Source: Diplonema japonicum (Eukaryota; Protista; Euglenozoa: Diplonemea). From it: a stretch of 64,000 bases of DNA. A program made the position numbers and the translations under genes. Positions 8,419 to 44,800 of the stretch are shown here, one piece after another. Under the pieces are notes generated by a model, which saw only the letters and a program-made list of their open reading frames with translations, had not been told where the DNA came from and searched no databases. The stretch covers positions 1 through 64,000 of the forward strand of contig OZ025702.1 in assembly GCA_964019335.1 (NCBI GenBank), in the 5' to 3' direction. How positions within the stretch are numbered: position 1 is the first letter of the stretch; each line of letters opens with the position of its first letter.

Positions 8419-11400
8419 ATGGCGTATTTATCAGATGTTACGCATAAGATGCTTGTCGGCAAGCATCAGCCTGCTCTGGGAATCCCGAGCGAATACCAGT
8501 ATTCGCAGAGATACAACAAGTCCCCTAACAACTTGGTCCCTTCTGAGGATGCGGGCATCACCGTCTCAGGCGAGTTCGTGGGTGGCATCAGGTGTATGGA
8601 AGTGCACAGGACTCCCGGGAGCAGCATTGAGAACATGCAGGTGTGGACTGGTGAGCAAGACGGTGCGCTGTGCGTGAGAGACGGGTTGGGCCACGGCAGG
8701 TTCACTATCGAGAAAAAAAAAAAAGTCTTCGTCTCGGCGCTCATGTGTCACGGATGGGACAGTACCCCTGGGCGATTCATGTACGCGGGGATGAGTGATG
8801 GGTATCTTCGAGTATATGACCAGATCGCGCTTCCCGACGGTGGCCACGACTACGAAATGGTTTGTGAGATCAAAAAGCACACGGCTGGTATCACCTGCAT
8901 GCTCTCGGTGCGCGACCTCATCATCACCGGCGGACGCGACTGGCAAATATTCATGTGGAGGTGGGACGGGATACCGGGTGCTGGTGGTTCTTTCCGTGCC
9001 ATAGACCAGCTGTGGGGCCACCAGAATGCAGTAAGGTGCCTCGCCTATGACCAAGGGCCCGATCGTTTGCTATACTCCGGTGGTGACGATTGTTCTATTA
9101 AGTGTCTAGAACTGGAAACAGGAATATCAAGATCTGTTCCGGGAGGTTTCCCGATCGAAGGCCATCAGATCACACGCCACGGACACAAGGGTGGTATCCG
9201 CTCACTGGTATGCTTGCAAGTATCGTCACATCAAATAAGGTTGTCTATGAGAAGTACCTCTTCTCTGCTTCGGAAGATGGTGCCATCAAGGTGTGGGACT
9301 CGCAAGACGGCACCTTCGTGAAGACGATGTTCAGGTGCCCTTTGGGCAGAGAGACTGCGGTTCTCACACTACTGAAAGGTATGATGCCATGACCTCACCT
9401 CATGCTGCACAGACCCTGCTGGCGGTAGGGTGTGGTCGGGCGGTGCTGATGGGATCATCCGAGTATTCAATGCCTACGACCATGTTCAGGTATGCGTTCA
9501 GCAGCAACAACATCGAAGCAGATCACGCAAATTGAAGACCCCCACAACGGCGCTATGGTGACGAACCTCGCCACCCTAGGGAGGCTGAATGCCATCAAGG
9601 GTTGGTACGTAACAAAAGAAGGCACTTGCAAGGTGCTTTACTCGGAATCAGACTCACCCGACAAGGTATTCAGCAGAAACAACAACCACGCACCACAACC
9701 ACAACCACAGTACATCGCCCCAACCACTGAGAACGAGGTCGCAATGATCAAAGAAGTTTCCAGGTTGCGAGCCATCACCATCCAAGACTTCAAAGATCTT
9801 GAGGCAAAGAAGAAGCAACACACCCGAATCCAGCACATTTCCGATAAGAGAAGGAGAGCTCTTACTAATGTTGTTGAGACTCTTGGCGGTACAACAATAA
9901 AGAGGAAGTTTTTCTCTAAGTTGCTGTTGTGGAACCAGAAAAACAAGAACGAGGTCAAAAGACGGGAGCTTTCGCACATCATGGGTGCAACAAACAACCA
10001 GTTGCTGGTGCACCTGTACTTCGCAAAATTGTTGAGATTCATCACTGTCACAAAGGAACAGAAGAAAAGGTTCCGCTTCGCAAGCTGTCTCATGACCAGC
10101 ACTACCAACGGCCTGCAAACCCTGTACTACAGGAAGTTAGTTGAATGGGTCAGACGCCACACGGTGACTACTCACAAGCGGGATGTCCTTTCTTGCTTGA
10201 TGAAGAATACGGAAGGCGGCATGAGGACCACATACTATCACAGATGGGCAAGATGGTCCTTCAAACACAGACAAGCCAAGAAGCGAGAAGCTATTTGCGA
10301 GTCACTGAGAAATGGGTCCAAACAGGGCTTGATGGTCACGTACTACTATAAGCTCATCCATTTCTATAGAAAAGAAGGAACTGTGAAGAAAAACCAAGAA
10401 TTAGGCAATGCTCTCCTTGCGACGCACAACAATGGGCTCAGAAGGGTCTTTATGCACAAGTGTCTGCAGTGGCTTGAAAAGAAGAAGAATAGCGACAGGA
10501 AGAAGCGTATGGCACAAGCATTGTTGAGGACAACACACGACGGCTTGCGCAAGTCGTGCCTTGCTAAGGCCAGGCTCTGGCTGACCGAACAGAAGAAGCG
10601 TAAGGTGGAGGAGAGAATCGAGGAGCTGGACAATGCAATGGATACCATCAACAGAAAGCTCAGTGAGAGCAGCTCGCTCACTGACGAGGACATCGACCGC
10701 CTGACCAGAGAAGTTAGTGACGAGATGGAGGCATTGGAGGCAGAGATGGACTCTTTGGAGGCTGAGCTCGTACGTTTGGATGAAGAAAAGAAGAATCTTG
10801 AGAAGGAACTGAGGAGTGTTGGCCGCCGCACCTTTGATTATAGCGCAGGTGAAAATGCCACAAAGCAAGCTCTGAGTGTGATCGGCTACTTAAAGTGCCA
10901 CGGTGTAAATTGCAAGAGCGACAACACTGCAATAAATGCCCTGCACGAGAAGAGGAAGAAGGGAGACGACCCTGTGACAATGTACACCAATGGGTTCAAG
11001 CGCGTGAAGGACAGCATCTCTGGCTTGTGCCAGAGAGAAGGTATCGAGCACGACATGTCTAAAGCCGAGTGGGATGTCCCGCATGACATCGTCACGCTAT
11101 TCGACAGGAAGCCCTTTGACGTTGCACACCAGGGAATAAAGGAGATGGTGATTGCTGCCGACCAGATGGCTGATCCGAAAATCAGCAGAGAGAGCATCGC
11201 GAAAGCAGAGCGGGGCCCCGTATCCAAGCAGATCCTTCTGAACCAAAACCTGCTCATCGACATCGTCCTTAAGGTGTACGAGAAGAGAATAGTAAAGGTA
11301 TGCCACTTGTGTGGTTCACATGCTTGCAGGAGCTCCGCCAGCTGACACCTGAGCAGATTGAAGAGTTCGATCTCAAAGACGCAAAGTTCGGGTCAGTGTC

Positions 11401-11844
11401 AGTGGCATCCCTAGGCTTGGGAGGAGACGGGGCTGACGAGAAACCGGATGTGCAGGAGGAAGTGGAATACGAGCCTGTGGTTGAAGAGGCACCTGTGCAG
11501 GTGTGTTTAAACATGTTCAGAAACTTATAATCGACAGTCGCCACGTACTGCCAAGAAGCCTGCTGCACCGAGAGCAACTGCAGGCTACAAGTTCAGCCCC
11601 GACCTGAAAATCACAGAACTGGGTCTTGGGTGCCCTGCTGCCAAGGCAGGCCTCAAGGTCGGTGACGTCATCACAGCTGTTGGGCAGACTAGCGTCAAGG
11701 ACAAGAGGCAGTATGCCTCTGCGATCAAGAAGATTAGAGTATGCCACCAAAAAAACACTGCAACCTTCACAGCCCGGCGATCCAGTTGTGGTGACCTTCA
11801 GAAGAGGTGCTCGTTCTAGGACCACGAGCATCAACATGCAATGA
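8419..11844 (+). CDS. WD40-repeat / helical-repeat / coiled-coil / PDZ protein, ~1074 aa; exons 8419-9207, 9240-9378, 9413-9489, 9522-11297, 11330-11500, 11538-11738, 11773-11844
   Basis: WD motifs (GHQNAVRCL...SGGDDCSIK, SASEDGAIKVWD, SGGADGIIRVF) and PDZ signature CPAAKAGLKVGDVITAVG. Six GT-AG introns of 32-37 nt give one continuous frame (3225 nt). Confidence 0.85.
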
Positions 11845-17712: not shown

Positions 17713-18447
17713 ATGGCATCTGAATACGACTACCTGTTTAAGCTCCTCCTCATCGGTGACAGGTATGCGTAACGCACAACACATCCACCCGCACCCACAC
17801 AGCGGTGTCGGCAAGAGTTGTTTGCTGCTCCGTTTTGCTGATGACACGTACACCGAATCCTACATCTCGACCATCGGTATGAAAAGATGAAAGACGGCGA
17901 TGTACATTTTACTTCTACTCACAGGTGTAGACTTCAAAATCAGGACTATTGAACTTGACGGGAAGACAATTAAACTCCAGATCTGGGACACCGCGGGGCA
18001 GGTATGCACATGCAGCAACTAGACACCACATGACAGGAGCGTTTCAGAACGATCACTGCGAGCTACTACAGGGGCGCACACGGTATCATCATTGTGTACG
18101 ATGTGACGGACGCGGAAACATTCAACAATGTGAAGACGTGGCTTAAGGAGATCGAGAAGTATGCTACGGACAACGTCAGCAAGCTGCTGGTGGGCAACAA
18201 ATCTGATATGGTGGTTAAGAAGGCAGTCGACCACGGCACCGCAAAGGACTACGCCGAGTCCCTTGGGATCCCCTTCTTGGAGACTTCCGCCAAAAATGCC
18301 ATCAACGTAGAGCAGGCATTCGTCACCATGTCCACCGAAATTAAAAAGAGAATCCAATCCAGCCAACCTGACCAAGGCAAGAGGTCGGGTGTCGACATCT
18401 CCAGATCGGAGAACATAGGCCAGAAGAAGAAGGGTGGTTGCTGCTAG
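17713..18447 (+). CDS. RAB1: Rab1 GTPase, 203 aa; exons 17713-17762, 17803-17876, 17925-18001, 18037-18447
   Basis: [51 protein letters not shown] and C-terminal GGCC. Introns of 40, 48 and 35 nt. Confidence 0.97.
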
Positions 18448-19297: not shown

Positions 19298-21499
19298 ATG
19301 GGGAACTGCACGTCAAATAAAAAAAAAGACACCACTAAAGATGATCAAGGTGCAGAGCGATGTGATGAGGTGCACATTGTGAAAGGAGAACACTCGCCTA
19401 TGGGACTTGACCTAGTCAAAAGGAACGGTGCTGTTGTCATCAAAGGCGTGTGTAAAGGAAGTCATGCTGAGAAGAATGGTCTAGGCAGCTATGAAGGATG
19501 GGAGATATGTAACGCAAAGGACTGCGAGGACCTGAAGACGATGAGCGAAGGGCATGATAACGTTGTTTTGAAACTGCGCCCTGAGAGACGCAACAGGGAG
19601 GCGCTCGACATGAAGCCCCCAGAGGGCGTGTGGATTGTGATACCCTCTCGGCCCATGCTCTCAGGATGGTATATCCCCGACCCTTTAGCGGCTTCAACAC
19701 CATCGACAACGTGCAAGACTTGGGGGACAGAGGATGGTACGCAGACTGTGCAGTACAAAGACAATCAGTGGGTGGCCAGCAGCACAGAGACGGTGGGGAC
19801 CGTGTACAAACTGGTCTCAAAAACATCTCCAGACACCATCACAGCTAGTGTGTGGGAGCAAGAGGTGCACATCGGTGTCACGACGGAAGTGTCGCCGCAT
19901 GTTCGTGTGTGTTCCTGGCACGACCCGATGACAGACGACAACGACTTCACACAGCTCCGCGAGTACCTGAACAGGGAGATGCACATCAACCGCGACTGTT
20001 TTGCGATCCACGTCAGCTACCTAACGTCCGACATCTGCCAAAATACCGACAACATCGACTTATGCGTGTTGCTGGTGTCCCTTACAGGGATATCTGTGGA
20101 CCACGACAAGTACGCGATGTTGGTGAGGTGTCTTAAAAGATACCCCAATGTCCTCAGTGCTTGGAAGTATTGTGGTCTACAGCCTTACGAGAAGTGTCGC
20201 AAGTTACAGGAACACACTCTGAGGTCATACAAAGCAGAACATGTGTTGCGCTTAAATCTGCTTTCTGAATACTTCCAGCTGTTTCTCGAGCTGCGCAAGC
20301 CGAAGCAAGCCCGCCAAACCCGCCAGGACCGTGTCTTAATTGCATTACTTGAGGATAGATTTGAGGATCGGGTTAGGAGGAAGCACTGGTCAATGTGGCG
20401 GAGGTGGGCTACTTTCAGACGCCAGATCCCAAGAGACAAAGTTCCCATGTTCGTACATAAGACAGAACCGCAAGGGGCACCCCAAAGAGAGGAGCTTCAA
20501 AAAGAAATGGTATCATACGGAACAAGCATGACCCCAAGGCTTGAAGCAGTGCGCACACATGTTGATCCCCTACCTGTGATCAAGCGCAGTCCTGTGGGTG
20601 CTGAAATCAAAAAACCGGTGGCAGACTGCAGTGCAAGCGAGGGTGATAGTCCTGTGTGCAGGCGTGCACCCAACTTGTACGATGCCAGTGACACGGAAGA
20701 AGAAGCGCCAGTTGCTCCCGTGCTAACGACCGAAAGAATTTGGCCTCTGTGCACATCAGCGCTGCCTTTTGCAAAGTACACAAGTCTACATCTTAGCATA
20801 GTGAAGGACAGACTGGGCTTTGTCCCCCCGATGGTACCCTCCTCACAGCTTACTTTGCTGCTGTCCGAAGGTGTTTACGGAGAGGACGCTGTTAGCGATT
20901 GCCTGCAGAGGATACAGGTAAGACTCCAAACACGTCTGGAGTCAGAGCGCTCACCGTACGCGTGGAGCTACATCCAGCCAGTACAAGCAGACGCAACACA
21001 AAAATGGATGCTCGAGCCGATCTTGGAACATACCTTAAACACGGTACACCCTAATATGACAAGATATCTGTTCATCAAGACAGAGATGACTTCGCCTTAC
21101 TGCACAGGATATGGCAGGGCCGACTTTGTTTTGAAGTCTGAAACGGGCACCCCTTTGCTCCCTGTACTTTTTTGCACTGAAGACATTTCTTCCACCCTCC
21201 CTCAGCTGTGGGCGCAAGTTGCAACTGCACACCAGCACCAGAAGACACTTCCTTCAGCACATTGCGACAAAGTGACCTACGGCATAGCGACTACAGGAGC
21301 CAGGTGGCTGTTTGTTTCTGTGGACAACAGTAGAGAACAGATCACAAAGGAGTATAGCTGGTTTGTGGACGCTGCTGACATTGTATGCACAAAGCAAACT
21401 AACTATACCTCACAGGTACGCGCGTTGCTGTGCTTGTTCACATACGAATGGCGGCAGCAGCACAGATCTGCAAAAGCCGCTTACGATATTTCTAAATAG
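19298..21499 (+). CDS. Putatively acylated (MGNC) protein with PDZ-like N-terminal region and C-terminal degenerate PD-(D/E)xK restriction-endonuclease-like domain
   Basis: MGNCTS start; PMGLDLVKRNGAVVIKGVCKGSHA (PDZ-like); C-terminal GRADFVL...QLWAQV...YGIATTGARWLFV. Confidence 0.7.
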   Translation: MGNCTSNKKKDTTKDDQGAERCDEVHIVKGEHSPMGLDLVKRNGAVVIKGVCKGSHAEKNGLGSYEGWEICNAKDCEDLKTMSEGHDNVVLKLRPERRNREALDMKPPEGVWIVIPSRPMLSGWYIPDPLAASTPSTTCKTWGTEDGTQTVQYKDNQWVASSTETVGTVYKLVSKTSPDTITASVWEQEVHIGVTTEVSPHVRVCSWHDPMTDDNDFTQLREYLNREMHINRDCFAIHVSYLTSDICQNTDNIDLCVLLVSLTGISVDHDKYAMLVRCLKRYPNVLSAWKYCGLQPYEKCRKLQEHTLRSYKAEHVLRLNLLSEYFQLFLELRKPKQARQTRQDRVLIALLEDRFEDRVRRKHWSMWRRWATFRRQIPRDKVPMFVHKTEPQGAPQREELQKEMVSYGTSMTPRLEAVRTHVDPLPVIKRSPVGAEIKKPVADCSASEGDSPVCRRAPNLYDASDTEEEAPVAPVLTTERIWPLCTSALPFAKYTSLHLSIVKDRLGFVPPMVPSSQLTLLLSEGVYGEDAVSDCLQRIQVRLQTRLESERSPYAWSYIQPVQADATQKWMLEPILEHTLNTVHPNMTRYLFIKTEMTSPYCTGYGRADFVLKSETGTPLLPVLFCTEDISSTLPQLWAQVATAHQHQKTLPSAHCDKVTYGIATTGARWLFVSVDNSREQITKEYSWFVDAADIVCTKQTNYTSQVRALLCLFTYEWRQQHRSAKAAYDISK

Positions 21500-21589
21500 C
21501 AAAAAGTAAAGCCATTTACACCATACACCGACATTATTGTAGCTGCCTTTTCTGCAATATAAAGGAACAAACCATCACAGGGTAGCACT

Positions 21590-24500
21590 ATGCGCTGCTT
21601 GCTGCTTGCGGCAGTTGTTGTGTTGCTATACCCAACGAATTTGTCGGGGATAACACTGCAGCAAGGATGGTATAGAGGAAGAAAGTTTAGTTACTACGAG
21701 TTTGGGAGCGGTAGTGTTGTTGATGTTAAACCGAGGATGTACACATTCGCGACAGAAAGTGCTGAGGGCGTGGTGACGCCTGTGCCGGGCCTCTACTCTG
21801 TCATCGATACAATTACTACGGATGCTAATTACACCGGGTTGTGGGACCACCTACATATCATCGTGGAAACACCTCCCGCAGCTCCAGTCACTTCTTCCGA
21901 AAGCTTACTCACTATGGCTACGGCTAATAATTGGAAGCTTGTGCCTACAGGCTACTTCACGCACTGCCCGCTTGTTGAACAAACAGCTGTTTTAGAAGGT
22001 CTCACAGACCAACCCACAAGAATGTGGCACAAAGATCAAACCTACCATTGTTTCTTGGTCGGCACTTCGCGTCATTATCCCTCCGACTTCATTGAAGTGT
22101 GGGACATCAAGAAGTTCCCCACCAAAGTACGTGTTCCAGAGAACGTGTTGTTGGACTGGGCACCTCACGAATATGGTTTCACGCCGGTGCTCAGAAAGCG
22201 CACTGCTTACGTGGCAGCTACTTACGTAAACAACAGCGTGAGGGCGCTCGCCTCACTTCTACTTCAGCCCCACGAGGTGGCCGATGTTAGTGAAGACATA
22301 TACGTTTCTTGGTACATCACCTCCATGGATCCTCCCACGTGGGACACAGCACAGTGGATCTGGTCGCGCGACCTCAGCACAACGAGTAACCCGACGCAGC
22401 TCTGGTGGACGCTCCGCGAGGAGGAGGTCGACTTCAAGCTCCAAGCCAGGTTTGGAATAGGGTGGATCGGGATAGGGTTTGGCCAGGCGGGGCTTGCGGG
22501 GAACGAAGCAACGGTAAACCTCATAACGTATCTTGACGCGAAGCGCAACTTGTGCATCTCTCATGGTTATGTTAATCAAGGAGAGAGCACTTTGAACCTG
22601 ATCACAGACAACCTTATGGGCGTTACGAACGTTACCCTTGACGTAGACTGGAGAGGCACAATGACCTTGTCTTTCACAAGACGTCTCCAAAGCACCGTCG
22701 TTGATTCGCTAGGCTTCACGCGACCATTGAGTTCTATTGTTGATGGCGAGGTGGGGAGGCTGGTGTGGGCATCACAATCAGGCCCTGCCATGGACACGTG
22801 TGGCGTGGGTGTTGACAAGTTGGTGAGCCCCGTCTATTCCTCAGGATGGGGTGCTCTGGATATACACTGGACATCAAGCAACACGGCTGTGCCTGCGGTG
22901 ATCACTACACCAATTCCAGTGGTGTACACCCCCTCTCCCGTCCTTACACAGAACACCCCAACACCACCCACAGTACCTATGGATTTGGTGCGTGGAAATT
23001 TAGTGCTTGATGCAAAGCTCTCAGTTACTTGGGAGATGCGGACAACTGACGAGATACTGTTCAGCCTCAGTTATCAAGGAGATCTGAGTGCCGAAAAGAG
23101 ATGGATAGGCTTAGGCATTGGTCGCGCGTTTCAGTACTCTGATACCATAACTGTGTGGTACAACAAAGGGGGGCAGGTCCTTGTCGAAGACAGGAAAGCA
23201 GCAGGGCTAAAGGAACCACCCTTGGATGCAAGACAAGATGTAGTCTTAAGGGGGCATCGAATATCTGCAGAGCTCACTGTTGTTAATTTTTCGCGGAAGT
23301 TGGCGACGGGCGATGTGGGAACAAGCGTGAAGCCTCGTTCAAGGACCACCCTTGTCCAAACTGTGCTGAGGAAGTACAGCGGGTGGTACTTGGGGAAGCG
23401 CACTGATTACTACTCGGCAGAAACTCCAGGCGGTGTGTTCGGTGGTGCTCAACCCTTCGCTGCGCCGTTGTACCGAATACAACTTTCTGGCTCAACTGAG
23501 TTGCTTCCGGGACAGATGCTGCTGATCGACTCTCTTCCTGGGCAGCAGGGGTACTCTGACTTACGTCAGATAATCACCGTCAACCCGCCAGCAGGCTACC
23601 AGGGCCCTGTGATATCGTGGGTGCGCAGCATACCAAGCGATTGGACGCAGGTGCGCACCTCTATCTTCATGAACTGCCCTGTGGTGCACGATGCCACCAC
23701 TCTAGAGGAAGATCCAGGGACTTTCCCCAAAATATCTCTGTGGTATAATGGTGAGTTGGTCCGCTGCATTGACTTTTCAGTGAGGGCAACCTCGCTCCCC
23801 ACGTTGTATCCTTTAGCCTGGGCATCTGCCTCTGACCCCTTGAACGGAACTCTAGTTAACACTTCTACAACCGATATGACCTATACCGGCGTGTGGAACC
23901 TGTACACCTACAACAGCACAACTGACGAGACTGTCACAAGTGCTGACGTGCTCTCTTCAGTCCTAGCAGATGCCACTCTCAATGGATACGTAAACAGGCC
24001 TATTGTCAAAGTGCATGATACTGTTGTGCAAACAACACCGTCACCTGATGTTGCTTCGAATTACGATAACACGATGTACTTAAGCTCCGAGCCGGGGAAT
24101 GAAGTAATCCTCCGATGGACTATTGTTGATGCCTCTGGAACAATGCAGGTGGAAGTGGAGTCAGAGGTTGGCGCGCAGAGTATGGTGAGTGTTGGTTTCA
24201 GTGCAACGACGTACCAGAGAATGGCCAATGCAGACATAGTGCTTGGATATGTGGGCACGGCTGGTGCCAGCTGTGTCCGTACGCTGTATGCCATTAACGA
24301 GGTGGGTGCACCCACGGGTGTGCCGCAACTTGTCGTCACCAACAGAGTACTCAATGTTGTCAATGGGAAGCTGCGCATGTCCTTCACCCGCACGCTGAGT
24401 GATGCCTCGACTGAGGGCATCATCCCAACCAACCCGTATCAGTCCATGAGGGTTCTGTATGCGACAGCGGCCAGCATCACGGGTGCTTGCAATGAGCAAG

Positions 24501-27500
24501 ATGTGTCGTTCCTCAATCATGGGACATCTCCCCATGGGTCGCGTGTGATATATTGGAGATTGCAAGATGGTGCTCCATCAGTCATTCCTTCGGCTGCGCC
24601 TTCAACAGGGCTGTCTCTCCCCCTTGACCAACCAGTTGCCTTTAACAGACAGACAGCATGGTTCGCAAGCAGTAGCGTGACCCACTATACTCTAAACAAC
24701 ACCCTGCAGGGTAACAGCACCTATGTACCTCCAATGTACGTCTACGACATATGGTGGCCTGCCGCACGCAACGCCATCATCGACGCTGTCCCCGGCATCG
24801 CTACATACAGCGATCTTATGAAAGTGAGACGTGTCCGCCTCCCTGACGGGTTTCCCGATGAAGTGACGTCACTAGACCAGCTCAGAACGTCAAACGCCTT
24901 CATCGAAGACACTGACTACTACTGGAACTGCCCTGTTGTGTCATTGAAAGCTACCTTCGATTCACAAGATACCATCGAACTCAAGCAGTTGTGGTACAAA
25001 GACCAGCTTGTGCAGTGTGCGCACTTCGGTAACTTGACGTCAACGCGAGTAAACCCCGTCTACGAAGTGTGGAGTGGCGGGGTCTTTACAGGGAGCCGTG
25101 TGCTGTCTTCAACGCCCTCATCGGTGGGGTATTCCCCCTTCAACTGGGTCGTCGAAGTCGCAGTTGCTGATAGCAACAAAGACGTTCGGTCAGCAGCTGA
25201 ACTGCTTTCGGTTAGCATCAGTACTACGGATGCCTCGCCACCGAGGCTGCTGAATATGCCCATCGTCCAGATCGATGCAGGCACACCCCTGCAGCTTACA
25301 CCAATCGTGCTCCCTTTGCAAACAGGATGGCTTGACAACAGGGAAGTACGTTACTTGGACTTCTCTGCACTTTATGGCAAAATACCTACCTTGCAGGATA
25401 CCGTTGTTACTGCCAATGTCTTTGCTTTCAGGTCTTTGAACTCTTACTGGGCTCCTGAAGTACAGCCTAATGTTATAAGTGTCGTTCCTGGTCAGACTGG
25501 TTACGCTGACTTGTGGAAGGTGACACTTGTCGTAGTACCAGCAGGCACGTCCCTTCCGATCACTTCGGCTGGCGACATCCCCGACGCTTGGAAGACTGAA
25601 TCACTTGTCATAATTAATTGCCCTGTTGTCCATAAGGATACCACCATCAGTGCGTACCCTGATGGCACCACCCCGCTGCTTCCTAAGCAGGAATGGTGGT
25701 GGAATGGCACTCGTATTACATGCTTTCTGTTCGAGGAAACTCTTGCCGGCACCGGACCTATCCTTGGGCAGCTCACCCGCGATGTGCTTGTGACAGGATC
25801 GGCAGCACCTGTGTTCACATCGTGGCCCGGCGACAACGGTGGCGGGCTCTCCGTCCCGCAGAACTTTGCAGGTCTGAACGGTGTTGTGTACACATCGGCG
25901 GCGATGGTAACAGGCTTCACGCTGTCTAAATCTCCATGGGCTGTGAACTGGCCTATTATTTTTGTTGTGGCGGCGCAGCGGCCTGCCAGTGTTGCTTACA
26001 ACATGGTAGCGTCGCAAGGTCTATACAGGGGAAAGGCCGTGGATTACTGGCTTGTAGTTAATAGCACAGCACCACCGATGCCAACCGTTATCGCACCTGC
26101 GCAAGACACCATTCAGGAAACAGTGCAGATGCCGACTGCAAGGGTGTACGTCTTCCGCAGGGGGGGTGTTAATGTGGAGGACATGCTCCCTGTGTTTGAC
26201 TTCCGCCCGGGTGAAGACCTCGTCAGAGACGGTGTGTACGGAGGATACAGCGACCTGAAGCGGGTTTTCTTTGTTGAAATGCCTGATAACGCACCCATTA
26301 CATCCCTAAGGAGTGTGGAAGAAGTGGCCAACCAGGGATGGCCCGTGACAGAGGCAACAGGTCTCTATTACAACTGGCCTTTGTGTGACGCGAGTACTGT
26401 GCTACCCCAGAGCATGAGCCTCTTAACTGGCTGGTCAAAGAGTGTGTTTGTCTATTACGTCAAGCTCACTGAACAAACAAACACCAAGATATCAAAAGCT
26501 TTCAGGGTTACTAGTGGCATGCTCGTGTTTCCCTTAGTCCCTGAATCGGCGGACTACACCGCATTTCATACAATATGGGAAGTGGCAGCACCTGACAGCT
26601 TTGATCCTTCAACAGATCTTGCCCTGTACTCCTTTCAACCGGTCTACCCTATTGTGGTACTAAACCTCCCTATTCTTGCAGCACCTTCAGCAAGCACTCT
26701 TACCAACGAAGTAGACACCCAGAAGGTTTACGATAAAAAAGCAGCATGGATGGGGGGCCGCGAGGTCCAGTACTACTCATTCACTAACACGCCGCTGCCT
26801 TCTGGTGACACTGTCGTGCCAATGGCAGTTTATGCCCTGCGTTACGGCACTGCTTACTCTTCTAAGCCAGTGCAAGCTTCCGAGATAGCTATAAGAAGTG
26901 CAGGTCAGCCGGGCTACTCGGACCTACAGTCTGTCCAAGTGGTTGAAGCAACTGGCGTGGCAGCATTCCCACTGCGGTCTGCCGAAAACTTGTTATCAGA
27001 GGCGCTCAACAACTCATGGAGCATAGTACCCACGAACCTTGAACGTGTCGCTCCCATGGTGCATCCTGGGTCTCTCCTTTCGGACGAGGCGCACCGCCTG
27101 CGCTACCCGAAGAAGGTCGTTTACCAAGGTGGCAGAGAAGTTGTTGTTATGGACTTTGGGTTCTCTGACCAAGCAAAAGCGCAGATCCCCATCTACAAGG
27201 TTGTAAACGCTAATAATTTGGTTTCTTACATCCTTTCTGCATCAAGCGTGCCTGCTGCTAGGTTCTGCAGAGAGGTAGTGAAGTTTGCAGACACAACCAC
27301 GTACCCGCTGATTGACTTGGACCCGGCATGGACCGAATGCCATCAACGCACCGAGCAAGCATGCCCACGAGAGCATTGCATATGGAATGGAACCTGTATT
27401 CAACCGGAAACACGATTCGTGTGTGCTCTTGTCTCGCAATCGCAGGGCAGGGCACCACTAGTTACTCTCTCTCGGGAGACAGGCTGGTTTGATGGCAGGA

Positions 27501-30500
27501 GACTCACCTACTACTCGTCGCCAAATACTGTTCCGGGGAACGCCACACACACAGTGACAGACACTGTCTACGTGTTCAGATTCCCTGCTGCACGGGGACA
27601 GCAGCCACTGGAGGCCGCAGGTGTTCCTGGTCTGCTCCCAGTATTCACCAACCTACCTGGAACAGAGTCCTACAGCGACGTGCACAAGTTAATGCTGGTG
27701 ACAGTCCCTCTTACCTACTCGGGTGGCCTCATAGAGACAAGAGAAGATGTGCTCAATGTGGTTGCCGCAGAAAACTGGGTGATCGCTGACACAGGGACCA
27801 TCGTCAACTGGTGGGTTGTGCATGCGAGCTCAACATTAGAGGACAGGGACACTACTACAGTCCCCAAAAACGAAGCATGGGCAGAAGGTGAGAAGGTGGC
27901 GTACTTTGACTTTGGGTCCATTAACTCGATAGATCACAAAGAGAAGTTTGTGCTTGTGAGAAACGGTCAAGACGTTGTGGACAACGATATCTTCATTCAA
28001 GCGGAGCTGGTGGGAACTGCTGTGGGCACACCCTACTCGCATCTCGTGTGGGAAGTTGCTGTCGCAGTTGATACGTCTTACGTGAGCGAGAACTTCACCA
28101 CGGCAAGCCAGCTGAGCGGGCTGGTGCCTAACTATAGGCGGCAAACAATCGCAAACAATCCCATCATGACTCTCGAGGCTCCGGTTAATGCGATTGATTT
28201 CGACGATTTAGTTATCGACCCCAGCCAACCGCAGGACATGTCCTGGGCCTATGGACAGGTCGAGAGTGTCACGCAGCAGCTCCTTCCATGCGAGGCAGCC
28301 CAAAGAGGGCGGACTGCTGTATCACTGCAGACGAGTACCACAACCAATCCACCCATTCCACCTGTGGGCAGTGACATAAGGACATGTATGGTGTTGACCC
28401 CAGTCTTCACGTTTTGTTGGGAAATCCTTGCTATCACACCTGACACTATCACAGTCACCTTCAAGATCCAAACAGGCAGCTGGGTGGGAGTAGCCCTCTC
28501 GCATGAGGTGCGAGAAGGAGGACCCAGGAATTCTGATGTGTGGCTGGGGTACCGCGACATATCAGGGCCGCAGCTTACAGACAGGTGGATAGGTCAGGAC
28601 CACGTTGCACTCCCCTCGATCGACACTGTGCTCGGCGGATCAAATGACCTCAGCATCATCGCAGGGCGCTCCGTGTACTCGGCTCAAAGGGACTATCACA
28701 ACATCACTTTTACAAGAAAGCTGGTGTCTCCAGACACAGCTGCCGACATCAGCATCAATAGCTCCAGTATCTTTGTATCATGGGCAACAGGAACAGGGGA
28801 CATCCCCACGCGACACTCTGCCACAAGCACTCTGTGTATAAACTTCTATACGAGCCAAGTGGAATTCGGCTGCATCCCGACATCACGGGACGAATGGTGG
28901 GTACCATTCACTATTATATTACTGAGCTGGGCTGTGCTCTGTGGTTTCTTCCTAGTAACGTATTCGCAAAAGAACTCAGTTCTTCACACAGTCGTTTTGT
29001 TCAAGGTGTGCTCTTATTGGGAAGACAACGAATCACACAGGGATCTGTCGCGAACCATCTCACAGCAGCACAGGTGGTACTGATTGCGGTGTACGTGACA
29101 CTTGTAGGCATCTGGGTGGCAATGAGTGCCGATAAGTACTACAATGTATGCTTTGAAATTAGAAGTTAATATTCAACAGTTGAAGTTACGAGTGCCAAGT
29201 CTGCGGGCTTTTGGGAGTGGTGCTGTGCTGTGTTTCTCTCTAATGTTGCTGCCAGTTGCGAGGTCTTCACCTCTCCTGTGGGCCGTTGGCATTTCGAAAC
29301 AGCGTGCTGCTAGATGGCACAAGTGGAATGGCATCCTGCTGCTGCTGCTGGTGACAATCCACGGAATCGGGATGGTATGTTGGTGTGCGGTCGCATAATT
29401 TATGTTAGGTCGCGACATACGCCACGGACGCTGTTAGTTGGAAGAGCGGTGACACCAAACGGCAACCAGGGTTAGCAGGCCTCCTCGCATTTGTAGGACT
29501 TCTTTTTCAAGGTTTCGTGGCTACTTCTCCGTTTGGAGGACGCTTGGTATGCAGTCTGATAGAAAATCACGCATCACAGGGATGGTTTAAGCGACGCTAC
29601 TATGAAGCCTTCCAAGTGATCCATATGTTTGGTGGAATCTGGTCTCTCGTGTGGGCTGTGATCCATCATCCACCGCTGCTGTACGGGGTGTTGTTCTCCA
29701 TTGTGGTCTACATTATCGACAAACTGTTCTACTTTTACCAGTGGATGACCGCCATGGATGGTTGGTCAACTGTGCTGTCTTGCATCTCGTGCTTTTTGTG
29801 CAGAGGGGATAGGACCCCCCGCAGTGCCTTTTTCTCTTGCCAAGATGAATCCTTCAACGATGGGCGGAAGCTATCGTGCCTCGAGCTCAAGGTCGTTTCT
29901 TCCGACCATTCGTTATGTTATGACACATTCAGAATAGACGCCATGGAGCCCCTGCAGCACGTACTCGTAAGGATACCTTCAGCAGGTAGGGAGTGGCATC
30001 CTGTTGGCATCAGTTGCCGTCCTGTCCACGTCGAGGACGATCAGCACGACCCTTTCAAAGGTAGCCCCACGACGTCCTTCACGCTGCATGTTGGCGCCAA
30101 CGATTCCAAGCGGCACACATGGTCAGCAAGAGTCCACCAACTTGCGTGTTCCATGGAGCGGCTGGGTTCCGTTCAAGTGATGGGACCTTATGGAAGGCCT
30201 GCTATTGACTTTAGGTCGTACGAACACCTGATCCTTATTGGAGGTGGGATTGGTGCTGCGCCCCTGATGTCTATCCTAGGATACTACCTTGACCCCGTGT
30301 GGGGCAAGCAGGCACCTGCTGGAAAAAGTAGAACAAAGCTCATCACTCTGATCTGGGCAGCCAAGGACAGAAAGATGTTCGACGTGTTCTGCGATGGCAG
30401 CGACTCTCCCGGCGTGCTACGGATGGCGCTGGATATTGACTATGATGCTCGTACTTCTAATAAGAACTTCGCGTTCAGAATGTTCTTGCACGAGACATCG

Positions 30501-30875
30501 CGTAGCAGGGACAACCCTTTACAGCGCGACACAGATAGTTACTCTCCTGGCGGGCTTGAGCAGCTCCAGCAGATAGCCGATGCCAAAGCGACCGAGACAA
30601 AAAGAAATCGTGTACAGCTAGTGTACAACGGAAGGCCCAACCTCTTCCAAAGAGACGCAGCGAGCTCCACACACCCTAACGTGTTTGATGACTTTGCTGC
30701 GCAAAATGAGCTTGGCAATACCCAACTCCCTGGCCTCACATCTAGAATCACCTCCGCAGGTGTAGTTGCTTGCGGCCCCCCTTCCCTCATGAGGGCCGTG
30801 CGTGCCTCTGTCGACAAGCACAACATGATGCAGCGGGGCCTAACCTTCCACCTTCACTCTGAAATGTGGACATAG
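21590..30875 (+). CDS. Giant repeat/DOMON/ferric-reductase (FRE/NOX-like) membrane protein, ~3049 aa; exons 21590-29005, 29041-29145, 29180-29374, 29409-29546, 29580-30875
   Basis: Signal peptide, 7 paired repeats and 4 DOMON domains (WIGIGFG, SFTRRL etc.). TM helices carry WHKWNG...TIHG and IHMF...IHH. Also EWHPVGIS, GPYG, LIGGGIG, ACGP and HSE. Four introns of 33-35 nt join the ORF pieces in frame. Confidence 0.88.
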
Positions 30876-30957
30876 AAAATAGATACAGACCGTCTTTATA
30901 TTATTAGAATTAGAAGTAAATTAGGGGCTAATTTCTTTCATTCACCTTCTGCAGGTC

Positions 30958-32898
30958 ATGTCCGGTTTGATCGACATAGATGGCCCTTCGCCTTGGAGGA
31001 TGCCGCTGTCCATGCTGAGCACCGACGAGCGGTCTATGCTGTACGGGACACGAGAACAGGTGAAGAGGTCAACTAAGATGAGGGAACGCTCAGACTTCAA
31101 GGGCATGGGGTACTGGGAGTTGTTGCTGTCAGTGAAGGGTTCTGTTCTAGAATTCACATTTTCATGGGCGGTGTTCAGCGGGTTGTGGGCAGGGCTTATT
31201 ATCTTGTGGCACGAGTACCAGAAGCCGATGGAGATGTCATCATGGCCTGTCAAAACGCATGAACTTGGTGCAGTTTTTATCTCCTTTGTGCTAGTGTTGT
31301 TCAGTGTTCAAGCTTTCGCTCGGTACGACACAGGACGTTCTTCCTTGGCCACGCTTGAGGCAGCGCTGGAGGATATGTCTGTCTCTCTCTGTGCCTATTC
31401 ATCACATGGACAAGCAGATGAAGAAGAGAGCATTCGAATCCTACCGTCGCTGCTTGCATCGATACGACACTCAGTGTGCTGCAAAGACATCGCTGAGAAC
31501 GGAGACCTGGCTGCCATCGAGCCCTTCCTCATCGACGAGGTCGCGAAGCATCTTTACGCGGAAGAGGTGCTGTGGGTCACAGGTGCCACAGATACCATAC
31601 CACCGCCGCGTTTTGTGATAAAAACACCGTTCAATGCGCATGAGTGGGACGACCCCTGTTTGCAGCAGGAGAGCGAGTCGAGCAGCACAGCTAGTTGGTT
31701 AGACGATCCGGAGTCCGACGCACGGCAGATATACTTATCCGGCGGTGCTGTCATGGAGCTAATCGAACATAAGGGCAACCTGCATCGACGGAAAGGACAA
31801 GACACTCTGTCTCTTGGCTATGTGAGAGGCTTTCCGAACACGCTGTACGTCCAGGACCAAAGTGGTGAGCGGCTCAGACTCCGCAATGCAGAGCAGATAC
31901 TTGCACTGAGCGTTATCCTTGCGGAGCACCATGTGCCGCACACCCTACCCTTGCCAGAGTCTTCGTGGCCTCTGCCCGCGTCCGGCGACCATGTGGTGCT
32001 AAAGGACCTCATCGACAAGCCTTCTTACAACAATAAAAGGGCCATCGTCACGAGGTTGGACTCACACATCACTGGCTACTGCTTTATTGTACTGCATGAA
32101 TCGAAAACCAACTGTCAAATACGAGTTCATGCAAGGAGCCTGTGGTGGCCCGAGCGCCAAGCGCCATGTATGTTTTGTATGCTGACGATAGCAGCAGGAG
32201 TGATGTGCTCAGTGTCGGCATCTTCTGAAGCCGACTGCAGCCCTGAGGGGTCGTACTACAGCTACAGTGATATCAGCCCGAAGCATAACGACGCGCCTTG
32301 GGAGTCAGTGTCGGCTATCGAGAGATCTCTTTATTATATGTCATGCGAAAGAATGCCTATGCCACTCCTTGTGAGCACTAAAACGAAACGAGAGGTTCCG
32401 AAAGAAATCACGCTGGAGCTGAACAAGGTTCCATTCAGACTCGCGTTCTTGCTGCAGCGAGAGCTGGTGGACGCAACGGGGGGAGAGTCGTGCAAAGGCA
32501 TTGACAAGGCCATCAAAGCGTGGCAGCAGATGCAAACCATTGTGGACCAGAAGTTTCCCCTTCCTTTGTACCACATTGCCGCTTTTATGTGTTTTGTGTG
32601 GATTGTGACAGTGCCCTTATACCTACTACGGGCTTTCAGTGGCAAGCAAGTGTGGCTCATTCCGCTCAGCACCATGTTTTTTGCAGTTTTATTCTTCGGA
32701 CTTTTCACACTAGCCGCAGAGCTAACAAACCCCTTTGGTTTCGACCCCAACGATTTGGACCTCTCTGCCAACGAGCACCGCATCTTGGAGTCTATGGCAG
32801 GGCTATTCCCAAACCGGTCTTTTACAAGACAGGAAGAGAGGAAGCTGCAGACACAGAGGAGGGTGCTGGACAATGTGGAACCAAATGTTCCTTTCTGA
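30958..32898 (+). CDS. Bestrophin-like (YneE/VCCN-type) anion channel with large cytoplasmic insert
   Basis: N-terminal TM pair followed by AFARYDTGR; C-terminal FPLPL...TM pair...ELTNPFGFDPNDLDL. Confidence 0.8.
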   Translation: MSGLIDIDGPSPWRMPLSMLSTDERSMLYGTREQVKRSTKMRERSDFKGMGYWELLLSVKGSVLEFTFSWAVFSGLWAGLIILWHEYQKPMEMSSWPVKTHELGAVFISFVLVLFSVQAFARYDTGRSSLATLEAALEDMSVSLCAYSSHGQADEEESIRILPSLLASIRHSVCCKDIAENGDLAAIEPFLIDEVAKHLYAEEVLWVTGATDTIPPPRFVIKTPFNAHEWDDPCLQQESESSSTASWLDDPESDARQIYLSGGAVMELIEHKGNLHRRKGQDTLSLGYVRGFPNTLYVQDQSGERLRLRNAEQILALSVILAEHHVPHTLPLPESSWPLPASGDHVVLKDLIDKPSYNNKRAIVTRLDSHITGYCFIVLHESKTNCQIRVHARSLWWPERQAPCMFCMLTIAAGVMCSVSASSEADCSPEGSYYSYSDISPKHNDAPWESVSAIERSLYYMSCERMPMPLLVSTKTKREVPKEITLELNKVPFRLAFLLQRELVDATGGESCKGIDKAIKAWQQMQTIVDQKFPLPLYHIAAFMCFVWIVTVPLYLLRAFSGKQVWLIPLSTMFFAVLFFGLFTLAAELTNPFGFDPNDLDLSANEHRILESMAGLFPNRSFTRQEERKLQTQRRVLDNVEPNVPF

Positions 32899-40898: not shown

Positions 40899-41855
40899 GT
40901 AACCTCTGAGCACACCAGCAAACCTCCAGGGGAGTCCAATTTTTGCAATTCTTTATTTGTTGATTCCTTGCGGAAACGGAACGGCATGCACACCATATGC
41001 ACCTAGTGACGCTGTGTCTCACTTCACTTCACTTGTGGTTTTTCTTCTCTTTCTTTTTTGCTTAGTTTCATTATGAACCTGTACTGGTGTCTTTCCTTCC
41101 ATTCACTTCCCATCTTTTCCCTTTTCTCGTACGTACAACAAATGGAGAACCGAGCTAGTTTTTTTCTCTTTTTTTTCCCCCTTTTTTTTCGCTCCCATAG
41201 TTCCAATGATATGAACCTGTTCTGGGCCATTTCCCCCCCCCCCCTCCCTCCCTGTCACTTCTTCTCCCAATTTTTTAAAAATTCTTTGTTGTATAGGTAT
41301 ACCGCGAGAAAAGAGAAAAGAAAAAAAAAAAAAGAAAAAGAACAAATCAGTAACTGTGTTGGTTGCACGTAAGCCACGGCACCGAAATAGGGCCCCGAAT
41401 TAGTTTTTATATTTTGCCCGTTTCGTAATGTGTAAGCCCTCCTCATCAGATACTCGAGCACTCCCTTCTGTAGACCTTGATTACTTGTTATGTGTAGATA
41501 ACCTGCATCAAGGCATGTTGAGGACCTTGATTCCCCCCCTCCCCCCTGCTCTTATTCCTTTTACGCAGATTCTTTTTTTTTTGATAGCGATTTCAAGCGC
41601 GGTCTGCCCGTCTCTGCAACCTGGCCTGGTGTTGGCTGAACTTATCAAAAGAAGAAGAAGAAAAAAAAAAGAACAGAATGTGAACTCATAACAAACTGTC
41701 AACGCTGCCTTCACTTTTTTGTTTTAACACAACTTCAAATGCAGCCCGGGTTTTTTCCTCTTTTTTCTTCCCTTTTTTCTTTCTTTCTTGCACCGCTTAG
41801 CTAGTTTTTTTATTTCGATTTTGAAACAAAGAGGTAATCCCATCAGGTAGTGGGG

Positions 41856-44800
41856 ATGCTGTTGTGCACCTTGTTGACATGTGTTAGCAGCCTGACGGTC
41901 GACACACCAGCGTTGGAGATAGTGGGCGGGCTTCCCAGCAGAGGGTTGTTGTGCCATGAGCCTCTGGAGTGCGAGTACCCAGAGTACGTAGCAGTGCCTC
42001 ATGGGCTTGAGGGCAGCCTACACGTAGCGTATGAGAGTGTTGACGATGCTGCGCTGTTTGCAGCACCTCCACAACTGATGACCGACGGCAGCAATGCAAC
42101 CCTCACCTTCTCCTTGCACCCCGTCACAGGGTACCATCACGTCTCCTTCCGGGCAGTGCTCACCAGCATGGACGCTACCATACAAGCCCCATTCACCCTC
42201 ACCATATCTCCGTCTCGTTCGCCTGAAGTCACCTACGTAGAGACGGGTACAATGACTGTCTTCCAAGGGTCTGGAAAGACTGTGAGTCAAGGCTTCGCCC
42301 AAGCCACTGGTGGCTTCGGGGTGATAACGGCGCAATGTGTTGCTGTGGACACTGCACTCTTCGTGGATTTACCGGGCTTGGTCTTTGACGCCGCAGGACT
42401 AGCTGATCTTACCTTCGCAGTCGGCCAAGTACCCGGTGCAACCACCGTGACATGTACAGTACGCGACATGGAAGGCGCCGTCTGCACAACATTATGTCCC
42501 ATCACCTTGTCGGTCATCGTTGCGGAGCTTGTGCCTGTTTTGGTCTTCAACCCCACCTTGCCCGGGAGTAGCGGCGAGCACCCCACTGTCACCATCAGAG
42601 GGGACGCTGGACGGCAATTCGTCAAGCTGTTCGACACCATTCACCTCCCCGTGGGCTCCTCGCAGAACATCGTTGACCCTGTGAAGTGCACTGCGAGCAG
42701 CGAGATCTTTGACAACAACATTTACATCAACAGCACGACAGGCGTGCTTTCCATTGAACCCCTTAGCGTTGCTGCTGCCAGTGCAAACCTGTCATGCACG
42801 GTGCTTGTGAATGGGGCTGAGAAAACTACAGCAACATTTGAAGTGGTGATCAGCACAGAGGAGCATTTTGTCTTTCAACCTACAACCTACCCCGTCATGC
42901 GCGTGGGGGAGAGCAGCATTATGGGGATTGCTGTCTCCATAGCACCTCAGGATGAGCTGGTCCTGAGTCTCAACGGTGGTGACTGTGTGCGCTTTGAACC
43001 CACCAACGTTGTCTTCACAACGGACGTGATCACAGCTGCTGTGATCGTGACATGCACATGTAGTGGTGAACACATGGTTGTCTACACCCTATCTGGGCCT
43101 GTTTCGGGGAGTTATGTGGTACCGTTCTATCCTAATGTTGTACAGGTTGTCGACAGTGCTTGGGGTTTGCGCTTCAGCAAGACGTCACATGTCCCCAAAA
43201 GTACTTACTACATGACAGCTCTCCCCGAGGTGGTGGTCGAGCTTACCGACTCCGCTGGCAGGCATGACACTAGCTCTGCACACGATATCGTGATCATAGC
43301 AGAGGCATCGCATGGCAGACTTCACAATTCCGTTGTTACTATGATAGATGGTAGAGCAGCGTTTAATGACTTGATGTTTGCAGACCATCCCGTCAACCCT
43401 GTGCTGTCTTTTAAAGCATCATCTGCCTCTGCTCCCGTCGATGGAAAGGCCCTCTCTTCAGGCATCATCGCTGTGGTGCCCCTTGCGGCCTATTCTATGA
43501 GATTTGTCGAAGTGAGTGCTGTGACAGACCTGGTTGTAACGGTGCGATCGCCTCTCCCCAGGGTAGTGGTAGAGCTGCTGAACTCTGATGACACCAAGGA
43601 CATAGCGACTGCTGGCGTCACTGTTTCAGCACTCAGCTCCAATGGTGGCCAGCTCAGCGGCAACATAGCTGTCTTCGGCGAACACTCAGCAGGGAGGGCC
43701 ATCTTCACAGACCTGCAGTTTCTGAACATTCCCGACCGACCAGTGGTGACCTTCATTGCTGAGGGAGAAGGTCGCGTGGTGTCGAGCGTGCTTAAAATCA
43801 GCGTCATGACAGTGCTACAGGCAGTTTGCAACGTTAACGACAAGAGCACCGAATGCACGTGCACCGGTGCCCTCGAAGGGTCATACTGCGATGACAGCTC
43901 TGCATCAACATTGGCGGACATTTGTACTGACGGCATCTGCAGGGGCTCTGTGCTGCATGGGTACCAGGCAGACGCTTCTGTAGTGACATCCGGCCTGAAG
44001 TTCAGCATCTCTATTTACGGTAGCAGGCTCCCTACACAAGGAACACCTGACATGTTGTGGGTGAGCTCATCTGCCGACTGCTCTGCAGCACCATGGCCTG
44101 GGGGTGGTGCCGTGCATATGCTTCCTACCCCTAGCAACAGCGTTCGGAGAACATCAAATCTTTTCACACTCACCAGTGCGTCGCAGACACCGCTGACCGT
44201 GTGCTATGACATCGACGGCGTGGGTTTGGAGCCACCTATTGCCGTGCCTTACTTGAGTGATGCACTCGTCATCGTCCCCAGTGTGCCTGTCATCACGGCC
44301 GTGCAGTCGGCAAGTTGCTTAAAGAGCTCTTCCGTAGTGTTCGTGCACGAGTGCCGTGACGGGGAAATCACCATCGCAGGACAGCACTTTGATACAATGC
44401 AAAAGAAAACAAGAGTTATCTTGACAAGAACGGGATTCAACAGGCATGCGGTGTGTGAGGTGAGAAGCTTGTCTAAGGACCAGGTTGTATGCGACTTGAA
44501 GGTGCCACCAAGTGCTTCTGGAAATTGGCTTATGGTGGTTGGGGTACTCGATGTTCTTTCTGACCCTGTGCCCATCGGATTGGTGAGCCCCACGCCTGTT
44601 GTTCACCAGCTGGTCCTCAGTACTTGTTTACAAAAAATAACAAATGTGGAGTCGCCGCTTTTGAATGGGTGCCGCCCCGGTGTGCTTAGTATTGTGGGCG
44701 CACACTTTGACAATGTGAAGCCGTCAATGAATGTGGTGACTTTTGTACCATCACTGAATGCAGAGGGCGTACCCCCTAGCTGTCAGGTTTTTGCGTCTTC

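Follow-up and report, generated by a model that had tools for sequence, protein, structure and literature searches.

A giant predicted ferric-reductase-type flavocytochrome with four DOMON domains and seven DUF7482-like repeat units in Diplonema japonicum

Ferric reductases with a DOMON domain on the extracellular side have been grouped in an eFRE clade, which holds seven paralogues of Naegleria gruberi, D0MUZ3 of Phytophthora infestans and F0X089 of Albugo (Zhang et al. 2013, PMC3591440). DOMON domains are also joined to cytochrome b561 in the CYBDOMs (HYP1 and CRR in Arabidopsis), for which reduction of Fe(III)/Cu(II) has been demonstrated, and in HYP1 a conserved Met/His pair provides the ligands of the DOMON haem (PMC10784544). 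A third described arrangement is that of DUOX, in which the six-helix FRD core is preceded by a signal peptide, a large ectodomain and one additional helix (PMC3591440). Here we compare with these systems a gene of the diplonemid Diplonema japonicum, located at positions 21590-30875 on the plus strand of a 64,000 nt stretch of DNA (contig OZ025702.1 of assembly GCA_964019335.1, positions 1 to 64,000), which is called the window in the following. The gene is made up of five exons with 2472+35+65+46+431 = 3049 codons, and all features given below lie on the plus strand. The domain order of the encoded protein is signal peptide, R1, DOMON1, DOMON2, R2, DOMON3, R3-R7, DOMON4, followed by seven transmembrane (TM) helices and the FAD/NAD(P)H lobes, R1 to R7 being double repeat units related to the Pfam family DUF7482 (PF24298). 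Essentially this order (signal peptide, seven paired repeats, four DOMON domains, TM bundle and reductase) had been given in a preliminary description of the DNA, and it was recovered by Pfam together with a map made from hidden Markov models. All searches and comparisons were done exon by exon.

Regarding the overall architecture, the D. japonicum protein has a ferric-reductase core and DOMONs outside the membrane in common with the DOMON-eFRE clade, a comparison that concerns the architecture. The DOMON-eFRE proteins, however, comprise one or two DOMONs and nothing else in addition to the core, whereas we found four DOMONs, seven DUF7482 double units, an extra helix and an ectodomain of ~2,400 aa. 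The two-haem transfer across the membrane to an extracellular DOMON haem with a Met/His pair, as proposed below, would resemble that of the CYBDOMs, which differ by their b561 core, by the use of ascorbate instead of NAD(P)H/FAD and by their single DOMON. DUOX is similar in its signal peptide, large ectodomain and extra helix, but has a peroxidase-like ectodomain, EF-hands and the NOX signature residues, none of which is present here. What is new relative to the known systems is the scale and content of the ectodomain with its DUF7482 array.

With a probability of roughly 60%, we read the protein as a type-I-like membrane flavocytochrome with seven helices that belongs to the FRE branch of the FRD superfamily and reduces extracellular Fe(III)/Cu(II). 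Cytosolic NAD(P)H would reduce FAD in the C-terminal dehydrogenase lobe, electrons would pass the membrane via two b-haems on the His pairs of TM3 and TM5, and they would exit toward the ectodomain, where at least DOMON3 probably carries a further b-haem. The outside acceptor would be reduced in a one-electron step and is most likely Fe(III) or Cu(II), whether chelated, colloidal or bound to a surface, with the DUF7482 array as a putative non-catalytic scaffold for binding or spacing. Haem loading of the DOMONs, the acceptor, the host membrane and the role of the repeats are parts that we infer only, and substrate capture by the repeats is pure conjecture.

Proteins of similar size were found in other Euglenozoa. 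The orthologue of Sulcionema specki (P0001) has 3101 aa, is derived from a 9,464-nt transcript and carries Ferric_reduct, DUF7482, NAD_binding_6 and DOMON matches; further diplonemid orthologues come from a Rhynchopus humris transcript (3431 aa) and from D. papillatum (KAJ9472030.1, 3164 aa, named 'Ferric reduction oxidase 5'). On the kinetoplastid side there are relatives in Bodo saltans (CUG10079.1, 3438 aa, named 'DOMON domain-containing protein') and in a transcript of Papus ankaliazontas (3427 aa). The preliminary description had called the architecture one that it did not recognise. In the papers searched we found no description of the orthologues, whose database names are automatic where there are any, but the architecture is not unique, as it is present in Sulcionema and Rhynchopus and nearly so in D. 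papillatum.

The reductase core

The last helix of exon 1, TM0 (28895-28966, aa 2436-2459 of the exon, hydropathy 2.5), is an extra one that links the ectodomain to the reductase core. Exon 2 (29041-29145, 35 aa) encodes TM1 with a hydropathy of 2.59 and maps to residues 2539-2570 of P0001. TM2 and TM3 are encoded by exon 3 (29180-29374, 65 aa), which on its own reaches 40.2 bits for Pfam Ferric_reduct (PF01794, cut-off 28) and is 68% identical to P0001 2573-2637 without gaps; it contains the first haem His pair, His47 (29318-29320) and His61 (29360-29362). An extracellular loop and TM4 follow in exon 4 (29409-29546, 46 aa, hydropathy 2.15, mapping to P0001 2638-2681). Exon 5 (29580-30875, 431 aa and the stop codon) comprises TM5 with the second His pair (His15 and His29 of the exon, 29622-29624 and 29664-29666), TM6 and the FAD and NAD(P)H lobes, and matches NAD_binding_6 (PF08030) with 40.5 bits at a cut-off of 22.2. 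At the other end of the protein, the start codon is the first ATG after a stop, and the N-terminal hydrophobic segment (aa 1-20, 21590-21649, Kyte-Doolittle 1.98) represents a predicted signal peptide; alignments with the orthologues start at aa 4. The hydropathy profile thus shows the signal peptide, TM0 as the last helix of exon 1, two helices in exon 3 and further ones in exons 2, 4 and 5, while the TM5 segment stays under the threshold used and is defined by its His pair. Because of the signal peptide and TM0, the N-terminal ~2,400 residues would lie outside the cell or in the lumen of a vacuole, and with seven helices the dehydrogenase would be placed inside. In the ectodomain the density of N-x-S/T sequons is about threefold higher.

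Both His pairs, which the preliminary description had listed as two H-x13-H motifs, are indeed found in exons 3 and 5 and are conserved in Sulcionema. The same description had named the FAD and NAD(P)H motifs HPVGIS, GPYG, GGGIG and CGP, each of which has a counterpart in an alignment of exon 5 with the dehydrogenase domain of NOX2 (E 1.3e-6): HPVGIS (29997-30014) aligns with HPFTLT, GPYG with GPFG, GGGIG (30240-30254) with GAGIG and CGP (30771-30779) with CGP. The members of each His pair are separated by 13 residues, and such a 13/13 spacing is the pattern of FRE/FRO proteins. In NOX2, 12 residues lie between the two His of TM5 (PMC3591440). More specifically, two marks distinguish NOX enzymes that generate reactive oxygen species (ROS) from metalloreductases, namely His-119, which follows the distal His of TM3 at a distance of four residues, and Thr-178/Gly-179 in TM4 (Zhang et al. 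2013, PMC3591440). The residue equivalent to His-119 is Met65 of exon 3, four residues after His61, and Sulcionema has Met there as well; a Thr-Gly dipeptide was not found in exon 4, which encodes TM4, a helix judged without a residue-level alignment to NOX2. Because of the Met at the His-119 site and the lack of Thr-Gly in exon 4, the core looks FRE-like rather than NOX-type. Pfam found no EF-hand, other NOX regulatory domain or peroxidase-like domain in any exon.

These residues also bear on the strongest alternative, a NOX-type oxidase whose outer haem would make superoxide from O2 at the cell surface or inside a feeding vacuole, serving in the killing of prey, in digestion or in signalling, with the ectodomain positioning or regulating it. 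It would suit a phagotroph-like protist, as diplonemids generally are, and the best matches of the dehydrogenase lobe among solved structures are NOX2 and a cyanobacterial NOX5; moreover, the combination of TM0 and a large ectodomain resembles DUOX (PMC3591440). We nevertheless consider such an oxidase unlikely, as the signature residues are missing, the TM5 spacing is 13 and not 12, and the regulatory domains of NOX enzymes were not found. Of the preliminary assignment to 'FRE/NOX', a FRE/NOX-type core with a very large ectodomain therefore stands, narrowed to FRE, and of its two suggested activities, reduction of a substrate or generation of ROS, the second has become the less likely one.

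Besides this gene, a search of the genome with the last exon gave five weaker matches to the dehydrogenase lobe (C14:650984, C11:215747 and 221776, C116:109827 and C18:68648). Four of the five lie in open frames of 1,450-1,660 aa, the match on C18 lies in a frame of 486 aa, and the two on C11 are in tandem.

DOMON domains and DUF7482 units of the ectodomain

In a Pfam scan of the whole of exon 1, DOMON (PF03351, cut-off 32.7 bits) reached 129.9 bits in four stretches and DUF7482 (cut-off 27.5 bits) 53 bits. DOMON1 (22334-22894) is weak and stays below the cut-off when scanned alone (23.4 bits), being nevertheless one of the four stretches of the whole-exon scan. DOMON2 (22958-23359, 43.8 bits) is short at its C-terminus and shows in addition a weak match to the cytochrome domain of cellobiose dehydrogenase (CDH; CDH-cyt). 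Neither of these two domains has the Met or the His ligand in D. japonicum. DOMON3 (24038-24577, 45.4 bits) possesses both, with Met878 (24221-24223) and with His977 and His982 (24518-24535); ten of the twelve relatives aligned retain the Met, and eleven retain His982, the His of a PHG motif. In the membrane-proximal DOMON4 (28352-28870, 38.4 bits) His2409 is kept and Pro2312 stands at the Met site. The paired His of DOMON4 is present in all relatives aligned and the Met in Sulcionema, Papus, Bodo and others; the giants of Papus and Bodo, which like the D. japonicum protein contain DUF7482-type units, DOMONs and a C-terminal reductase module, differ from it in that they keep the Met in DOMON4 and in DOMON2.

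Ligand positions were judged by motif and conservation and not by alignment to a solved structure, as searches of PDB sequences with DOMON3 and with a profile of the four DOMONs gave nothing usable to anchor the Met/His positions. DOMON3 probably carries a b-haem, and in most relatives DOMON4 probably does too. Since only DOMON3 has a conserved Met/His pair and DOMON4 has the His alone, at most two ectodomain haems are likely in D. japonicum, perhaps just one. The four DOMONs of the preliminary description were thus all detected, but they do not amount to four haems.

The remainder of the ectodomain is made up mainly of seven repeat units of ~220-240 residues, each consisting of two related subdomains, which were delimited by tiled self-comparison and iterated profiles (a BLAST search of the whole protein against itself gave the identity match alone, and the repeats became visible with tiled queries). 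The subdomains have a W-x-x-G hairpin, a GYSDL-type strand and an NCPVV-type strand in common, and the units are 23-39% identical to one another. Single units score 21-24 bits for Pfam DUF7482 and remain under the cut-off that exon 1 as a whole passes. R1 (21647-22339, unit profile 3.4e-75) shows its best match to unit 1 of Sulcionema and Rhynchopus and contains the pair Cys126-Cys154. The corresponding pairs are Cys696-Cys726 in R2 (23363-24025, 6.2e-76), Cys1114-Cys1143 in R3 (24638-25285, 1.9e-73, DUF7482 23.8 bits) and Cys1344-Cys1378 in R4 (25307-25978, 1.5e-67), which has 21 bits for DUF7482 alone and contains the best DUF7482 stretch of the exon. No Cys pair is found in R5 (26000-26680, 1.9e-59) and R6 (26726-27322, 2.8e-63), and R7 (27464-28186, 1.1e-85) has no Cys. 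Thus R1-R4 have exactly two Cys each at matching positions and R5-R7 lack both, which suggests one disulfide per unit in R1-R4 and an oxidising extracellular location. Between R6 and R7 the translation shows a Cys-rich insert (27335-27424) with five Cys in 30 residues and no Pfam match; a comparable stretch is present in Sulcionema, and the Cys spacing is reminiscent of a small disulfide knot.

An AlphaFold2 model of R2, built with 64 sequences, is all-beta and two-lobed (pLDDT 84.7, pTM 0.83). As a whole unit, the model has no match among solved folds (best Foldseek hit in the PDB E 0.9, best Z 2.4 in a wide VIA-align search, best BFVD hit E 1.3). It supersedes an earlier unit model from seven sequences, which had a pLDDT of 63 and no structure match. 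Phage-tail leads from the ESM Atlas (scores <0.9) were not borne out by BFVD, and the Atlas recognised a Tat signal only; export by the Tat pathway was in turn rejected as a cofactor clue, with an RR motif in 4 of 85 small relatives.

Searching 1.84 billion representative sequences with a profile of the seven units yielded 625 matches at E up to 0.001. The top matches are the giants of Sulcionema, Rhynchopus, D. papillatum, Papus ankaliazontas, Bodo saltans and metagenomes; the others, retrieved down to 1e-40, are mostly proteins of 280-320 aa with a single unit. In all ten profile matches scanned, DUF7482 was the top or sole Pfam match of the repeat region, and NCBIfam holds no model for this family. 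The bacterial relatives belong chiefly to Chloroflexota (Dehalococcoidia, Anaerolineae), others to Bacteroidota, Ignavibacteria, Latescibacterota, Acidobacteriota and further groups. Like the units of the D. japonicum protein they are two-lobed and show the motifs GW-x-G, GYSDLW and NCP-V. They differ in having one unit, in being secreted or lipid-anchored and in lacking a redox partner domain; many start with signal or lipoprotein leaders, and some are fused to PKD domains or to a sorting tail of the type IX secretion system (T9SS). A His/Met/Cys cluster hinting at a metal or haem site was not found among the residues conserved across the DUF7482 family. Since it joins DUF7482 to an electron pump, the euglenozoan protein may provide a first functional context for the bacterial family, namely redox chemistry outside the cell. 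In the 62.5 Mb D. japonicum assembly, a search with the unit profile found the repeat in this gene only. A DUF7482 protein of 288 aa (RUS23012.1, P0061) is also present in an assembly of the mucoromycote fungus Endogone sp., and represents either a second eukaryotic occurrence of DUF7482 or bacterial contamination.

Several observations weigh against the function proposed here. In the core, Pfam FAD_binding_8 gave no match with an E threshold of 1, and HPVGIS is a variant of the FAD motif HPF[ST] (HPVNIS in Sulcionema); since FAD_binding_8 was not detected, the FAD lobe is judged divergent. DOMON4 is the domain best placed to take electrons from the outer haem, yet its Met site (28517-28537) is Pro in D. 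japonicum, Val in D. papillatum and Leu in Rhynchopus. DOMON3, on the other hand, is separated from the membrane by ~1,400 residues of sequence, which makes an unbroken chain of haems uncertain. The residues conserved throughout DUF7482 are mostly structural, with Q, D, S, N and one C in addition, and give no ligand clue, and the neighbourhoods of 64 bacterial DUF7482 loci yielded only histidine kinases and one unannotated neighbour. Furthermore, no read spans introns 1, 2 or 4 in the runs of this organism or its near strain, and we found no biochemical or expression data for this protein or any orthologue.

The nature of the ectodomain leads to two other explanations. The protein could be an electron donor for redox enzymes that are secreted or located at the surface, comparable to the CDH cytochrome domain, which feeds lytic polysaccharide monooxygenases (LPMOs); the DUF7482 units would bind the polymer on which these enzymes act. 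DOMON is related to the CDH cytochrome domain, for which DOMON2 gives the weak match mentioned above; the conserved family residues include the aromatic and polar W, Y, Q, N, D and S, as found on carbohydrate-binding surfaces, and the bacterial relatives are secreted, some with PKD domains or T9SS tails. The D. papillatum genome paper emphasises polysaccharide breakdown in that species, but it names neither an LPMO nor an auxiliary-activity family. As a partner enzyme was likewise not identified and the structure searches brought up no similarity to a carbohydrate-binding module, we regard this role as improbable. We give somewhat less credit still to the idea that the ectodomain is chiefly a device for adhesion to or recognition of prey, particles or substratum, and the core vestigial or a mere anchor or sensor. 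The relatives preserve all four haem His together with the FAD and NAD(P)H motifs, nearly every difference in the reductase exons is synonymous and the Met/His pair of DOMON3 is conserved, which a vestigial core would not lead one to expect, even if the very long modular ectodomain with its disulfide-bonded repeats and Cys-rich insert, and the loss of the DOMON4 Met in three lineages, would fit such a device.

Orthologues and gene structure

The order R-D-D-R-D-R-R-R-R-R-D (R, repeat unit; D, DOMON) is identical in D. japonicum, Sulcionema and Rhynchopus. One unit fewer is detectable in D. papillatum, Papus has one extra N-terminal unit, two environmental relatives give extra N-terminal unit matches, and the giants of Bodo saltans and of marine metagenomes were resolved less completely by the profiles used. 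Identity to the diplonemid orthologues is 36-41% in exon 1 and 45-56% in the last exon, and the ectodomain is 22-25% identical to the kinetoplastid-side proteins; a word-based search from the Bodo protein matched only itself. Against their positional counterparts in Sulcionema and Rhynchopus the D. japonicum units score about 2-4 times higher than against any other unit (for example 125 vs 52 bits). As these same-position matches far exceed the matches between paralogous units, the array is old and each of its modules individually maintained. Judging from these comparisons the family is common to diplonemids and free-living kinetoplastids. That the eleven ectodomain modules are individually preserved among diplonemids points to a specific and non-redundant role at the cell surface.

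A bolder version of the reductase reading, which we put forward only as a doubtful possibility, is an ancient, Euglenozoa-wide machine for extracellular electron transfer, in which the FRE core would be wired through haem DOMONs to a seven-fold array of the bacterial-type domain that would hold an insoluble or polymeric acceptor such as colloidal or particulate Fe(III) or a polysaccharide for oxidative cleavage. If true, this would be a eukaryotic counterpart of the bacterial cell-surface mineral reductases and an iron route for some of the most abundant heterotrophs of the ocean. D. papillatum, which has an orthologue, has been reported to be genetically tractable.

The ORF (open reading frame) track of the window's plus strand shows an ORF of 2,497 codons at 21590-29083 and a further one at 29517-30875. 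In the preliminary description four tiny introns had been proposed to fuse these ORFs into a protein of ~3049 aa, and this model is borne out by the comparisons that follow. The introns have lengths of 35, 34, 34 and 33 nt, are all GT..AG and phase 0, and thus lie exactly between codons. Reading through intron 1 (29006-29040) leads to the stop at 29081-29083. The length of intron 2 (29146-29179) is not a multiple of 3, and exons 2 and 3 abut on P0001 at residues 2572/2573. Intron 3 lies at 29375-29408. Intron 4 (29547-29579) has no in-frame stop, its retention would add just 11 residues in a loop, and on P0001 exon 5 follows directly on exon 4, at 2683/2684. Altogether the five exon translations are collinear on P0001 (8-2536, 2539-2570, 2573-2637, 2638-2681 and 2684-3099), with zero residues inserted or missing at any of the four junctions.

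Among sequencing runs, a search returned DNA data of the same organism as well as two runs of low share that are presumably RNA. Compared over 25400-31300, run X2 is 95-99% identical to the window and represents a near-relative strain. One of its contigs (record 8) omits exactly 29375-29408, so that intron 3 is seen spliced, and further fragments of the run cover the ectodomain exon (26982-28422) and the last exon (29720-30857). In runs X1 and X2 together we counted 33 differences, 29 of them at third codon positions of the predicted frames and 29 synonymous, which indicates that the gene is under purifying selection. For Rhynchopus, the ORF P0003 from the genome agrees with the transcript protein P0151 (3431 aa) as far as residue 2856 and departs from it thereafter; this residue aligns exactly with the end of exon 1 in D. 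japonicum. The genomic ORF P0166 on the same contig rejoins the transcript at residue 3000, close to the site of intron 4. Two further diplonemid assemblies likewise contain a giant ORF and a last-exon ORF of ~450 aa on one contig.

Because intron 3 is spliced, the junctions are gap-free against a transcript-derived orthologue, genome and transcript of Rhynchopus differ at the expected places and purifying selection acts on the frames, 21590-30875 is confirmed as a single intron-split gene. The least probable of all alternatives is accordingly a pair of genes, namely a TM-anchored ectodomain protein that ends at the 29081-29083 stop and a separate reductase downstream: the ORF track gives separate ORFs, intron-unaware gene callers divide the orthologues alike in three other genome assemblies and introns 1, 2 and 4 have no spanning read in this organism, but each of the transcript-derived orthologues (Sulcionema, Rhynchopus, Papus) is one continuous ORF with a length of 3101-3431 aa, the junction and splicing evidence stands against it, and exons 2-4 have no start codon of their own able to yield a complete six-helix core.

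Genomic surroundings

All ORFs of ≥400 aa in the window (1-64000) are located on the plus strand and are separated by spacers of ~80-90 nt, for example 21499-21590 and 30875-30958 on either side of the gene. An AG is present a few bases upstream of each start codon inspected, and 9-10 nt upstream of the ATG of the gene described here. Strand bias, tight spacers and the upstream AG are as expected for polycistronic transcription with spliced-leader acceptors. With its tiny introns and gene spacers of ~90 nt D. japonicum is unlike D. papillatum as published.

Candidate tiny introns were also noted in neighbouring genes at 5732-5766, 9379-9412, 11501-11537, 18002-18036 and 32177-32212 (GT..AG, 32-37 nt, plus strand); a crude scan of the window for tiny introns was non-discriminating, with 14 candidates on the plus and 8 on the minus strand. 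The immediately downstream gene (30958-32898, plus strand) encodes a bestrophin-like channel protein of 646 aa (Bestrophin_2), and a second giant ORF of 2,674 aa with DUF7497, DUF7498 and a TIG/IPT domain is located at 41850-49874 on the plus strand.

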